From sequence record NC_042056.1: a DNA stretch of 64,000 nucleotides; one strand, written 5' to 3'. Both the position numbers and the translations under genes were made by a program. Shown here in pieces: positions 2,175 to 10,720 of this stretch; positions within the stretch are counted from its first letter, which is position 1; each line of letters opens with the position of its first letter. The notes below the pieces were generated by a model. It ran no database searches and had not been told where the DNA came from. It saw only the letters and a program-made list of their open reading frames with translations.

Positions 2175-3014
2175 ATGAGAAAGGTGCTTTTCGGAATACT
2201 TGCAGCGTTGACGTTTAGCATGTCCGCAGTCGCGGCAGACGAAGTAGTGATTACCACAGGACAGCAGGGCCTGACCTATAACTCGGTCTATGGCGTTAAT
2301 CTGGCCGGTGCCATCAGCGAGTTCGGTACTCGTGCACGGGTCATCCCGTCGAAGGGGTCGTTAGACAACCTCGATAAAGTTGCCGCCGGTGAAGCCCAGA
2401 TTGGTTTCACGCAGGCAGATGCTTTCCAGTTCTGGCGCGCTAAGCACCCGAACGAAGCGCAGAACGTTGACATCGTCGGTCAGCTGGCCCGTGAATGTGT
2501 CTGGGTCGCTGTCAAGAAAGATGGCAAAGTTAAAGATGCGAAAGATTTAACCGATGGCGTGAAAATCGCAGTCGGTGAACCGGACTCTGGCTCCTACGCC
2601 AGTTGGCAATATCTGCAACAGTTGGTGAAAGAGTATTCCAAAGCGGAAACTTACGCCAAGGGCGGTATCCGTTCGTTGTCCAAAGTGGCAACGGGTGAAT
2701 ACGACGCATTCCTGTGGGTATCTGCGCCGGATAAAAGCAACAAATTCCTCGAAGCGGTCAATCAAGACAGTTCTGGTTTAGAGCTGATTGACATGAGCAC
2801 ATGGAACGTCAACGACAAACTGCCTAACGGCCAGTCTGTGTATACGAAAGAAACGGCCAAGACAGACAAGACCGCGTTCTTCGGTAAGAAAGTTGATGTT
2901 CCGTGCACCACCACACTCGTCGTGGCCAACACTGACGCTGGTGATGATCTGCTCGAAACCGTTTCTACCATCCTCCTGAAAAACAATTCACGAGTGATGG
3001 GGGACAAAAAATAA
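2175..3014 (+). CDS. TAXI-family TRAP solute-binding periplasmic protein
   Basis: Signal peptide plus motifs ITTGQQGLTY, SKGSLDNL, IGFTQAD and IAVGEPDSGS. Confidence 0.8.
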   Translation: MRKVLFGILAALTFSMSAVAADEVVITTGQQGLTYNSVYGVNLAGAISEFGTRARVIPSKGSLDNLDKVAAGEAQIGFTQADAFQFWRAKHPNEAQNVDIVGQLARECVWVAVKKDGKVKDAKDLTDGVKIAVGEPDSGSYASWQYLQQLVKEYSKAETYAKGGIRSLSKVATGEYDAFLWVSAPDKSNKFLEAVNQDSSGLELIDMSTWNVNDKLPNGQSVYTKETAKTDKTAFFGKKVDVPCTTTLVVANTDAGDDLLETVSTILLKNNSRVMGDKK

Positions 3015-3020
3015 AAATAT

Positions 3021-3668
3021 GTACTGACCCAGTGCATCTTTTCGGGCTGGGTAGGGTTAATGTCCCTACCTGCGCGGTGTTCGTTAAGGCTGGTAACGTT
3101 CGCTAAGACCTATCGCATACCCGTAAGTCGATAGCAGCCGGTTACACAAAGAACTATCCATGTGGTAGGTAACCGACCGTTCACGATCTCATTAGGTGAG
3201 CAAATAATCTATGCAAGGACTTCTAGGATTTGTGCTCGACATGATGGGCAGCTTACGCCGCCTCATCAAGCAGTTACGAATCTGGAAGCTTGCCCATTAC
3301 TGGTTTACAGGCGAAAAGGCATCTCGTGAGAGTGTGCCATGCAAACTGCGTATTTACATTAGTATGTTCACTGCGGTGAGCATAGGTCAAGCCCCGGAAC
3401 GATAAGCCGGTCAGCTACGCCTGTAAAATACAATCTGAAAATCATAATGGGATTAAGTTCCCAGATTTGAAAAGGCGACTGTGTGTCGTCGGCGATAACC
3501 CCCCGTCGTGGACTCGGTTATCCCAAAGGTAATGTGAAAGGGGTTGGTGCTTGGAGGCGCTAAGACCGGCGGATACGCTGGCTCAGAAGAAGAAGTCCAT
3601 CAACCCCGTTCTCACCTGAGTAACACCCTTTACAAGGCGTTACTTATATATGCGAAAGCGAGGTGAAC
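3021..3668 (+). ncRNA. putative large (~650 nt) structured ncRNA
   Basis: Intergenic, with more than 12 helices and three nested long-range pairings (see findings). Confidence 0.7.
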
Positions 3669-3995
3669 ATGGGAATGTATCGTGAAGGCCCTGAAAGCAC
3701 GGTGACTCACCGTAATCATGATTACTCTGTGGATGCATTGCTGGATATAGCGGAACGTCATAGCCTCGTTCAAATTCCAGTGTCTAGAATAGAATGGATT
3801 TTAAACGAGACTACGCTCGATGATGAGCGGGTTAAGAATGCAGATACGGATTATCCAATAATCGTGCTGCACGAAGGAAGTTTGTATATTGTATTAGACG
3901 GTGCCCATCGCCTTGCGAAGGCGGTAGCCGAAGGCAAAGACACCATCGCAGCCAAGATATTGGTGCCTGCGAATTTACCGAAACCGGTACGATAA
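3663..3995 (+). CDS. ParB/Srx-like domain protein
   Basis: YPIIV...IVLDGAHRLAKA motif. Start is GTG 3663 or ATG 3669. Confidence 0.75.
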   Translation: MNMGMYREGPESTVTHRNHDYSVDALLDIAERHSLVQIPVSRIEWILNETTLDDERVKNADTDYPIIVLHEGSLYIVLDGAHRLAKAVAEGKDTIAAKILVPANLPKPVR

Positions 3996-4026
3996 AAGTC
4001 TAATTACAAGAATACACTGTATTATG
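3994..4026 (+). promoter_or_regulatory. second copy of the tRNA-cluster promoter
   Basis: 22-nt exact repeat of 826-847 with TATG at 4023-4026. Confidence 0.6.
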
Positions 4027-4113
4027 TCGGAAACCCGATTTGATGTTGCACAGAGCGTTACGCTGCGGCGTTTGCTGGTGTGCAGGGTTAGGTCGGGATT
4101 CTGGCACCTATTT

Positions 4114-4199
4114 GGCGGGTTACTCAAGCGGTCAACGAGAGCAGACTGTAAATCTGTTGCCTTCGGGCTTCGTAGGTTCAAATCCTTCACACGCCACCA
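4114..4199 (+). tRNA. trnY: tRNA-Tyr (GTA)
   Basis: CT-GTA-AA loop, long variable arm and CCA, with one acceptor-stem mismatch. Confidence 0.9.
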
Positions 4200-5299: not shown

Positions 5300-5305
5300 A
5301 ACAAT

Positions 5306-5397
5306 GGCTCCGTAGCTAAATCGGTAGAGGCAGACTTTAATTAGTTCTCCAACGATTTTATAATCGCGTGGTGTAGGTTCAAGTCCTACCGGAGCAA
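5306..5397 (+). pseudogene. degenerate class II (Leu-like) tRNA
   Basis: Acceptor, D-region and T-arm are present. The anticodon arm has a 6-nt TTAATT loop and there is no CCA. Confidence 0.55.
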
Positions 5398-5474
5398 GAG
5401 CACTGCTGTTAAGTTGGTTAACACCCGACCCATACTCGGATATTCGCACGTTCGATTCGTGCCAGTGCTCGCCC
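5398..5474 (+). tRNA. tRNA with CAT anticodon (Met or Ile2), atypical
   Basis: CC-CAT-AC loop (C at 33), 8-bp acceptor pairing, GTTCGAT T-loop; ends GCCC. Confidence 0.7.
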
Positions 5475-10106: not shown

Positions 10107-10720
10107 GCTTTTGGGGTGAGGCAGACAAGACGCCGTATGTGCAAGCATTACGCATGTCTGAGATGCAACGTCAGGAGGTGACAGTCCAGCTCCTCCACAC
10201 CGCATTAGAACACATCTTCCTTTCGCTCGAGGAGATGCCTTTCGCACAGCTGCATGACCACCTTGAGAAGTATGTTGATCAGGTGCTGCTGCATAAGCTC
10301 CTGCATCAAGACAAGAAGTTGGAAGAACCCGAGGTTATTCGCGGGCGAACCCGTATTGTAACAGAGACCATGTTCGGTAATGATATCCTCGATACCCGAC
10401 TGGTTGACCGCGTCGTTTATGCAACTATCCGTGAACTGATTGATGTGGCGTTCGGCGATATCTTCAACAAGTTCGTTGATCAGATTGAATCGATGATTGA
10501 GGAATCGTGCAAACTGTGTAAGCGCAAGTTCAACCGTTACGCGATTGTGACTATCACACCGAGACTGGGCGTTCGTGCGAAGCTTGTTTGTTTGGAACTC
10601 GAACTGGGTGATGATATTCGACATGTCTACTTCAATCAGCGTTTCCCAACCGGGCGGTATTGTTCAGATAACGATGATAAAATTCGTGACCTGCAAAGCC
10701 TACTTCCGAATATTGGCTGA
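10067..10720 (+). CDS. hypothetical protein
   Basis: Likely start ATG 10067 within the 9995-10720 ORF. Confidence 0.7.
   Translation: MVKLYIKPADVHVSFWGEADKTPYVQALRMSEMQRQEVTVQLLHTALEHIFLSLEEMPFAQLHDHLEKYVDQVLLHKLLHQDKKLEEPEVIRGRTRIVTETMFGNDILDTRLVDRVVYATIRELIDVAFGDIFNKFVDQIESMIEESCKLCKRKFNRYAIVTITPRLGVRAKLVCLELELGDDIRHVYFNQRFPTGRYCSDNDDKIRDLQSLLPNIG

Follow-up and report, generated by a model that had tools for sequence, protein, structure and literature searches.

The gp9 gene of Erwinia phage Machina is identified here as part of a conserved, structured RNA of ~570-630 nucleotides (nt) that lies beside the transfer RNA (tRNA) genes of the phage. The DNA analysed, a window of 64,000 nt (NC_042056.1), corresponds to bases 1-64000 of the Machina genome (KX397370) at 100% identity; Machina belongs to the genus Machinavirus in the family Chimalliviridae, in keeping with the enterobacterial phage context proposed in an earlier sequence-only reading of this DNA. 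That reading had flagged the region between gp8 and gp10 as a candidate large, highly ordered non-coding RNA. A large conserved RNA next to tRNA genes is indeed present, but it is not simply non-coding. Comparison with its homologues suggests a single, rightward-transcribed structured RNA that carries gp9 and has about an even chance of being a riboregulated small-protein messenger RNA (mRNA) or a dual-function RNA. The descriptive core of this reading, a structured RNA with a real small open reading frame (ORF), is much firmer than the regulatory mechanism. The element is classed as a new RNA family, both structured and ORF-bearing, that is restricted to SPN3US-like Chimalliviridae.

A folded RNA conserved within one phage clade

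Homologues were gathered by blastn, nhmmer, two IMG/VR pattern scans, one metagenome scan and two look-ups of gene-called contigs. The resulting ~27 distinct sequences come from Machinavirus, Seoulvirus (the SPN3US group), Erskinevirus (with Asesino and phiEaH2 among its members), Wellingtonvirus and uncultured or metagenomic relatives, and fall into ~14 lineages at <90% identity. The two viral scans and the metagenome scan returned this same clade only, no homologue was found among plasmids searched by blastn, and among 185,579 bacterial and archaeal genomes (one per species) a pattern scan matched five times, in each case by chance and with no nhmmer support. In Machina the conserved extent is ~3048-3612, plus a tail motif at 3645-52, and no further copy of either domain of the element occurs across the whole genome of 241,654 base pairs (bp). 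The TATG at 3018-21, previously taken as the start of the region, is not conserved even in the close relative pEa_SNUABM_6.

The order perceived in the single sequence was partly borne out by comparison with controls and relatives. The whole region folds better than dinucleotide-shuffled versions of itself on both strands (z = -4.0 for the + strand and -6.3 for the - strand, 20 shuffles each), and covariation is present in both structured domains:

5' domain: P(-1), PL1, P1, P2 and P2a; 17 sequences, 33 pairs, 96.3% of cells paired, 20 pairs compensatory
3' domain: P10, P11, outer P12, P13 and P13a; 21 sequences, 36 pairs, 95.8% of cells paired, 14 pairs compensatory

Corresponding control values were 75% paired in shuffles and 33-47% with the partner slid for the 5' domain, and 85% and 35-49% for the 3' domain. 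Across the curated helices G.U cells outnumber A.C cells by 81 to 11, which identifies the + strand as the folded one, and the covariation strongly backs a folded + strand RNA. Furthermore, several unpaired blocks are invariant or nearly so in all lineages, namely the loops of P(-1) and P1, ACAAAG.AC in P2, ACAAUCUGA and the GGAGRCG/AGAAGAAG internal loop of P13.

These observations bear on the idea that the region acts as DNA, for example as a replication origin, packaging site or protein-binding array in which the helices are mere inverted repeats. Both strands do fold better than shuffles and the region is close to the point where these genome records conventionally begin, but the asymmetry between G.U and A.C, the compensatory changes that retain pairing and not sequence, and the codon-position signal in the ORF make a DNA-level element extremely improbable.

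A closed junction 5' of the small ORF

The 5' domain, or leader, of the Machina element contains the following helices:

3048-3056/3064-3072, + strand: P(-1), a 9-bp hairpin (UGGGUAGGG/CCCUACCUG) with GGG/CCC closing and a 7-nt loop
3074-3078/3176-3180, + strand: PL1, a long-range helix (GCGGU/ACCGU) that encloses P0, P1 and P2/P2a
3082-3098, + strand: P0, an optional hairpin (CGUUA/UAACG)
3110-15/3129-34, + strand: P1, a 6-bp hairpin (CUAUCG/CGAUAG) with a 13-nt loop of consensus CA.ACC..UAAGU
3139-45/3169-75 and 3154-57/3165-68, + strand: P2, with the invariant internal loop ACAAAG.AC, and P2a

Three local helices had been proposed in this part of the sequence, and all of them are conserved with compensatory changes: GGTAGGG/CCCTACC (3050-70), which extends to the full P(-1) stem at 3048-3056/3064-3072, CTATCG/CGATAG (3110-34) and CGGTTAC/GTAACCG (3139-75). 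The P(-1) stem is found in all lineages with both-side changes in 5/9 pairs, and its loop keeps the consensus YUGRURU across lineages (UUAAUGU in Machina). P1 is paired in 100% of cells with both-side changes in five of its six pairs, while P2 and P2a are 98-100% paired with 7/12 pairs compensatory. P0 is present in the Machina group, takes other sequences in Erskinevirus and Wellingtonvirus, and is missing in the S4 and SPN3US groups.

PL1, which was absent from the sequence-only reading, seals the 5' domain as a multi-helix junction. It comprises 5-7 bp in 20/20 lineages, with variants that include UACGGU/ACCGUA, CACGGU/ACCGUG, GACGGA/UCCGUC and GCCGGG/CCCGGU; 97% of its cells are paired and three of its six pairs are compensatory. 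The 5' domain is a closed, covarying fold that ends 7 nt 5' of P3, the hairpin that holds the Shine-Dalgarno motif of gp9. Kissing of the P(-1) loop with the P1 loop was also considered, but the pairing fits certain lineages only and was dropped.

A conserved ORF with a predicted occluded ribosome-binding site

Three features define the coding part of the element and its translation start:

3211-3405, + strand: gp9, small ORF (PHROG 26199) of 64 amino acids in Machina, a hypothetical protein in the GenBank annotation, and of 55-64 amino acids in relatives
3187-3200, + strand: P3, a small hairpin (CUCA-UUAGG-UGAG) containing the Shine-Dalgarno motif AGGUGAG
3213-3293, + strand: P4, a long imperfect hairpin of 81 nt within the coding region, from the G of the AUG to near codon 28

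It had been stated that the region holds no credible ORF, which is wrong, as the ORF at 3211-3405 is conserved and has a coding signature. Its frame is open in 25/25 distinct sequences, at the same place and in the same frame, while the other five frames contain 56-85 stops in total. It begins with ATG and ends with an invariant UAA (3403-3405) located in the loop of hairpin P9, and independent gene callers predict the same ORF on metagenome contigs. Codons 1 to ~35 (3211-3315) have a ratio of nonsynonymous to synonymous substitution rates (dN/dS) of 0.1-0.3 at a dS of 0.5-2.5 (Nei-Gojobori, within-group pairs). Differences by codon position in this half amount to 52, 31 and 69 summed over six pairs, the second position changing least; a rough chi-square on these sums is ~14 with two degrees of freedom, the pairs not being fully independent. 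From codon ~36 to the end (3316-3402), dS is ~0-0.26 and dN/dS 0.6-3.5, with no codon-position bias. This split implies selection on the protein in the N-terminal half of gp9 and on the RNA in the C-terminal half; constraint on nucleotides and base pairing continues through the 200 nt that follow the ORF.

The gp9 product is predicted by AlphaFold2 (13-sequence alignment) to form a helix over residues 2-33 at a predicted local distance difference test score (pLDDT) of 80-86, followed by a tail below 50, with an overall mean of 64.7. The predicted helix is cationic and amphipathic, and its best 19-residue Kyte-Doolittle window scores 0.2-1.05 among eight homologues, so that it lacks the hydrophobicity of a membrane span. 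A peptide motif, R.W.L..YW[FL][TS]G.G..R, is conserved. The family has no match in Pfam and corresponds in PHROGs only to the unnamed family 26199; meanwhile, a gp9 profile run against 1.84 billion representative proteins found this clade alone, plus two repeat-protein artefacts.

Translation of gp9 would start from a site that is predicted to be occluded, as P3 holds the Shine-Dalgarno motif and P4 begins at the AUG. In Machina the motif AGGUGAG occupies 3194-3200, 10 nt 5' of the ATG, and a purine-rich motif lies 6-12 nt 5' of the ATG in every lineage. Variants of the P3 stem include CUUA/UGAG, AUUA/UGAU and ACCU/AGGU. The start codon (3211-13) stands at the foot of P4, which recurs with identical topology in 12/12 lineages despite saturated synonymous divergence; its folding z is always negative, at -0.35 to -3.3 with a mean of ~-2.1. 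P4 takes the place of a 13-bp helix drawn earlier between 3242-54 and 3286-99, whose strands are complementary in Machina but for which inspection found no matching helix in the aligned relatives. The central region cannot be aligned with certainty, and the case for P3 and P4 comes from inspection and folding energies, not from covariation statistics.

The combination of a small ORF, a highly structured mRNA and a buried Shine-Dalgarno motif and start codon recalls type I toxin modules, in which processing would activate a silent folded mRNA for a membrane-active peptide and an antisense RNA might hold it in check. The peptide is predicted to be an amphipathic cationic helix, and Machinavirus has a 3' anti-Shine-Dalgarno sequence, CUCACCU (3611-17), that is able to pair with the Shine-Dalgarno motif. 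The hok-type toxin mRNAs share the small ORF, the buried start and the long-range folding, and a possible 3' anti-Shine-Dalgarno pairing is a further likeness, on the side of the element in Machinavirus only. A toxin-like module is nevertheless very unlikely: the peptide has no segment of transmembrane grade and is insufficiently hydrophobic to span a membrane, the anti-Shine-Dalgarno sequence is missing outside Machinavirus, no antisense gene is identifiable (sigma-70-like matches on the - strand are no commoner than in shuffles, and phiKZ, of the same family, is reported to transcribe without dependence on the host polymerase; PMC8244752), and the RNA is much larger than hok-type mRNAs and several-fold longer than typical type I toxin mRNAs.

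The second half of the ORF and its possible pairing with the trailer

The central domain spans the second half of gp9 and the sequence that follows its stop codon:

3318-3338, + strand: P5, hairpin GGCA-U-CUC GUGA GAG-UG-UGCC with a GNRA loop
3363-3384, + strand: P7, hairpin UAUGUUCAC-UGCG-GUGAGCAUA
3390-3416, + strand: P8 (AGC/GCU) and P9 (CCGG 3394-97/CCGG 3407-10), with a 9-nt loop that contains the stop codon
3301-3444, + strand: competing closures of the central domain, helices A, B and C
3304-13/3418-27, + strand: helix A, a perfect 10 bp
3382-87/3419-24, + strand: helix B, AUAGGU/GCCUGU
3301-10/3435-44, + strand: helix C, UGGUUUACAG/CUGAAAAUCA

The presence of GNRA-type loops had been asserted from the Machina sequence, and the GUGA loop of P5 (3326-29) does remain GNRA among Machinavirus and Seoulvirus relatives. 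Variants of P5 include GGGAA..CCC-GUGA-GGG..UUCCC and UGGG..CCC-GYAA-GGG..CCCA. The compensatory substitutions in P5 are not silent but change the peptide, as seen between Machina and SNUABM_43. The hairpin previously noted at 3363-84 persists as a position and not as a sequence: P7 is occupied by a hairpin in all lineages, with its sequence replaced by GUCCG/CGGAC, GUCCC/GGGAC or GUCUA/UAGAC. P8 and P9 are invariant in the Machinavirus/Seoulvirus alignment, and the relative L049 has compensatory UGCA/UGCA and UCGG/CCGA.

Helix A had been listed earlier as a perfect 10-bp pairing, but it does not stand up as a general feature. Its sequence is invariant in Machinavirus and Seoulvirus and therefore offers no covariation, Erskinevirus and Wellingtonvirus do not have it, and it is incompatible with helices B and C, with which it competes. 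In Erskinevirus and Wellingtonvirus, helix B becomes GAAGGU/ACCUUC, with three compensatory pairs, and helix C is extended. Candidate helices A and C both pair coding sequence with the trailer.

The 3' domain and tail

The second conserved domain follows the ORF and is listed here with the tail:

3430-38, + strand: near-invariant ACAAUCUGA, two positions of which vary in a few relatives
3448-63, + strand: P10, hairpin UGGGA-UUAAGU-UCCCA, 100% paired
3474-79/3485-90, + strand: P11, GGCGAC/GUCGUC, with 4/6 pairs compensatory
3491-3524, + strand: P12, a variable hairpin with 3/3 scored outer pairs compensatory
3540-52/3593-3607, + strand: P13, a 13-bp stem with a UC bulge, which GAA/UUC flanks (3536-38/3609-11) extend to 3536-3611
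3620-3652, + strand: tail hairpin GUAAC.CC/GG.GUUAC (Machina group) and motif TATATATG (3645-52)

Two helices of this domain were already part of the sequence-only reading. GATAACC/GGTTATC (3494-3500/3516-22) is conserved with compensatory changes, and the 10-bp helix 3540-49/3598-3607, also conserved, turns out to belong to the 13-bp P13 stem. P10 lacks covariation because its sequence is almost invariant. P13 is 98% and 93% paired with seven compensatory pairs, and contains a conserved internal loop rich in purines (GGAGRCG/AGAAGAAG) with an inner hairpin at 3560-86. All 24 aligned relatives share the P13 blocks GGUGCUUGGAG and GAAGAAGUCCAUC without change except Wellington (L030/L033), where the sequence is replaced and a long stem retained (GGAGGGGAUG/CAUCCCCUCC); pEa_SNUABM_11, also a Wellingtonvirus, retains the standard P13, and L052, found later, carries AUGCUUGGAG. 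For P12, at least three unrelated sequence types are seen, and genera share them irrespective of phylogeny. One of them, GGCGCGGUACCUCAUACGGCCGGUACGCC, is found in pSal-SNUABM-04, UViG17, L049, the SPN3US group, UViG21, UViG23 and Asesino. This distribution suggests that P12 may be exchanged as a module by recombination.

Beyond the 3' domain, (T)TATATATG(Y)GAA is kept 20-40 nt past the element in at least six lineages; it directly precedes tRNA-Gly in UViG21 and Wellington and is absent where a tRNA abuts the element. A role as a general phage promoter was rejected, since the motif occurs just once in the 241,654-bp Machina genome, both strands included. It may act as a specialised promoter, mark a processing site or belong to the RNA itself.

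One RNA or several adjoining units

The two ends of the region had been thought to be joined by three nested long-range pairings, and this end-to-end architecture is not conserved. The pairing 3217-24/3591-98 lacks conservation on its 5' strand, and 3192-3200/3611-19 matches a Shine-Dalgarno motif with an anti-Shine-Dalgarno sequence in Machinavirus only. In 3179-90/3660-68, the 3' strand coincides with the ribosome-binding site (RBS) and start of gp10, which has no counterpart in many relatives. When a 25-sequence alignment was scanned without bias for long-range covariation, no convincing end-joining helix or link between the 5' and 3' domains emerged; the sole 6-bp candidate, 3136-41/3300-05, overlaps P2.

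The region could accordingly be pictured as three independent units that happen to adjoin: a leader with a cis-regulatory role, a small gene of the ordinary kind and, 3' of it, a structured RNA in its own right. The last would be the leader of the tRNA precursor or a by-product of its processing, released by RNase P or RNase E in the manner of the small stable RNAs of the T4 tRNA cluster. PL1 closes the 5' domain on itself, P13 abuts a tRNA in three lineages and no well-supported helix links the 5' and 3' domains, all of which would suit this picture. Against it, leader, ORF and 3' part always occur together across the ~27 sequences, with one copy of each per genome; the structured 3' part includes the end of the ORF, whose stop codon is in one of the loops, and candidate helices A and C join coding sequence to trailer. 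Three separate units are therefore held to be an unlikely explanation.

Relationship to known RNA families

Searches for known RNAs were negative apart from tRNAs. With cmscan and Rfam 15 at gathering thresholds, the whole window yielded tRNAs only, and at an expectation value (E) of 10 or below no relevant match was found for Machina 2900-4120 or the homologous loci of eight relatives (nine homologues in all). The covariance models of GOLLD (RF01998) and ROOL (RF03087) likewise gave no match at E<=10 in the nine homologues, and ARAGORN reported tRNAs and no transfer-messenger RNA (tmRNA). The lack of an Rfam match in the nine homologues rejects GOLLD, ROOL, group I introns, RNase P RNA and tmRNA as the identity of the element. 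The earlier suggestion of a GOLLD/ROOL-class or new large RNA thus loses its first half and keeps its second. A group I intron was further rejected because there is no interrupted host gene, the flanks of the element differing between lineages. RNase P RNA and tmRNA were set aside too: motif resemblances (GAAGAAGUCC, GUGAAAG) differ in order and pairing context, and a likeness to RNase P CR-I/CR-II and to group I R/S boxes was dropped as the motif pairing differs, the order is wrong and no model matches. The element is not described in literature consulted on SPN3US, Machina, structured RNAs of jumbo phages, or GOLLD and ROOL near phage tRNAs.

GOLLD and ROOL (bioRxiv 10.1101/2024.12.08.627333) are large RNAs of phages and prophages, ~500-800 nt in size, with many helices and conserved loops and located by phage tRNA genes. 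The element resembles them in size class, in helices with conserved loops and in its phage tRNA neighbourhood, and the tRNA-adjacent location fits membership; the absence of a covariance-model match and the conserved ORF with its coding signature do not, and membership was rejected. The element is also restricted, as far as it is known, to Chimalliviridae infecting Enterobacterales. Self-assembly into RNA-only multimers is a further trait of GOLLD and ROOL.

A functional rather than familial likeness to GOLLD and ROOL has more in its favour. The element could be mainly a trans-acting ornate RNA, a particle that works on tRNA metabolism, on translation or on transport from the phage nucleus, its ORF being secondary, for example as a partner peptide or a tolerated frame. 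Its size, many covarying helices, long invariant unpaired blocks (ACAAAG.AC, GGAGRCG/AGAAGAAG) and near-invariant ACAAUCUGA are consistent with such a role, as are the constant tie to the tRNA cluster, the constraint on half of the ORF as RNA and not as protein, and the swapping of the peripheral hairpin P12 as a module, as in large structured RNAs. No Rfam model matches, however, the N-terminal half of the ORF is under clear protein-level selection and is preceded by a Shine-Dalgarno motif and ATG, and nucleotide identity in the 3' domain (61-84%) is not above that of the neighbouring protein gene (73-78%). An RNA acting mainly in trans is regarded as rather unlikely on this evidence.

Staphylococcus aureus RNAIII is 514 nt long and encodes a 26-amino-acid amphipathic peptide. 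The element resembles RNAIII and SgrS/SgrT in being a long, multi-hairpin constrained RNA with a helical-peptide ORF inside structure that would limit translation; it has no sequence or structural homology to them, resides in a phage, and its ORF is longer (55-64 amino acids) with a 3' half that overlaps conserved helices. By analogy, it would work most like dual-function RNAs of the RNAIII kind and structured toxin-type mRNAs, while being homologous to neither. With riboswitches, T-boxes and ribosomal-protein leaders it shares a closed junction with invariant unpaired nucleotides directly 5' of a Shine-Dalgarno hairpin; unlike these, it has no Rfam cis-regulatory match and possesses a second conserved domain after the ORF, which ordinary leaders lack. 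Species 1 and 2 of the phage T4 tRNA cluster (rnaC/rnaD) are small stable RNAs of ~120-140 nt without an ORF. They are comparable as structured phage RNAs within a tRNA cluster, probably processed with the tRNAs, but are smaller, ORF-less and not homologous.

A model for riboregulation of gp9

In the favoured reading, a riboregulated small-protein mRNA or dual-function RNA, translation of gp9 would be intrinsically repressed by P3 and P4 and released either by binding of a factor (small ligand, protein or RNA) to the 5' junction domain or by RNA processing. Constraint at the RNA level beyond what coding explains coexists with a coding signature; a dual-function RNA would in addition be translated and might act in trans. 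A ribosome translating gp9 must unfold P5-P9, so that a given molecule is either a translated mRNA or a fully folded RNA particle, and the two states would be mutually exclusive. The 3' domain would confer stability, direct processing or act in trans, and in Erskinevirus-type relatives RNase P would cut the 3' end at the abutting tRNA.

Transcription in SPN3US-like Chimalliviridae takes place in the phage nucleus and is separated from translation in the cytoplasm, which makes post-transcriptional control by RNA structure plausible and, so far, little explored. Classical attenuation, which relies on coupled transcription and translation, is unlikely in a nucleus-forming phage.

Several points weigh against riboregulation of gp9. 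P3 has just 3-4 bp and was judged by eye without statistical scoring, the P4 z is weak (above -1.1) in 4/12 lineages, and the 5' domain is called aptamer-like from its architecture. The closure of the central domain, by A or by B/C, differs between lineage groups. Moreover, the position of TATATATG after the element in most lineages implies that co-transcription with the tRNAs is not general. Finally, covariation counts partly reflect shared ancestry, as the sequences represent one clade with ~14 effectively independent lineages.

Large conserved structured RNAs are rare, and most known examples are ribozymes, ribonucleoprotein scaffolds or self-assembling particles. It is conceivable, if doubtful, that the element represents a new class of large ribonucleoprotein RNA in nucleus-forming jumbo phages, an ornate particle of ~600 nt that encodes its own cationic helical peptide partner. 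Were this so, the particle would work in trans on the supply of tRNAs, on translation or on the passage of RNA across the phage nucleus, and one molecule could be either translated or folded into a particle, never both at once. What sets the element apart is an unusual trio in one RNA: an aptamer-like closed junction 5' of a buried RBS, an ORF under split selection and a conserved 3' domain by tRNA genes.

Genomic neighbourhood and annotation

In all annotated genomes examined, the element is on the same strand as the tRNA genes and sits within their cluster or at its head. In Machina its protein-coding neighbours are:

2175-3014, + strand: gp8, a TAXI/NMT1-like solute-binding protein
3663-3995, + strand: gp10, a small protein annotated as ParB-like

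Nine tRNA genes occur in the window, all on the + strand like gp8 and gp10; tRNA-Trp and tRNA-Cys lie upstream of the element, tRNA-Tyr and others downstream. The upstream neighbour varies between lineages (TAXI gene, 243-nt coding sequence or tRNA), as does the downstream one (ParB-like gene, HNH endonuclease gene or tRNAs). In Asesino, phiEaH2 and UViG23 a tRNA starts ~7 nt past the last helix, P13. In UViG17 (L017, ~10270-10350) a tRNA stands upstream of the element in place of the TAXI gene, so the element holds its place among tRNAs while protein-coding neighbours change. HNH_3 endonuclease genes are inserted just 3' of the element in two metagenomic relatives (L049 4069-4533, L052 3535-4056).

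A terminator-like end of gp8 precedes the element in Machina:

3020-3043, + strand: hairpin ATGTACTG/CAGTGCAT followed by a TTTT run

This hairpin is restricted to the Machina subgroup, with a compensatory stem in pEa_SNUABM_6; other lineages lack it and have different stem-loops after their upstream gene. A CTGAC(C/A) motif (3023-3027 in Machina) is found 8-25 nt 5' of P(-1) in most lineages and may mark a transcript 5' end or a promoter element. Scans for sigma-70 promoters and intrinsic terminators gave matches no commoner than in shuffles.

The annotation of this region can be corrected in several respects. In SPN3US-type records (L002 2146-2924; also L012, L014 and L016) the element is an unannotated gap of at least ~780 nt in which the conserved 55-amino-acid ORF is not called, and the RNA domains are unannotated everywhere. 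For gp10, the annotated start is GTG at 3663, while GAGGTG (3657-62) with ATG at 3669 is a better RBS fit and is the start used in related records. An ARAGORN call of tRNA-Ile (anticodon AAT) at 5305-5398 spans 94 nt and scores just 31 bits in the Rfam tRNA model, indicating an atypical tRNA-like gene; Asesino is annotated with a similar tRNA-like call of 121 nt.

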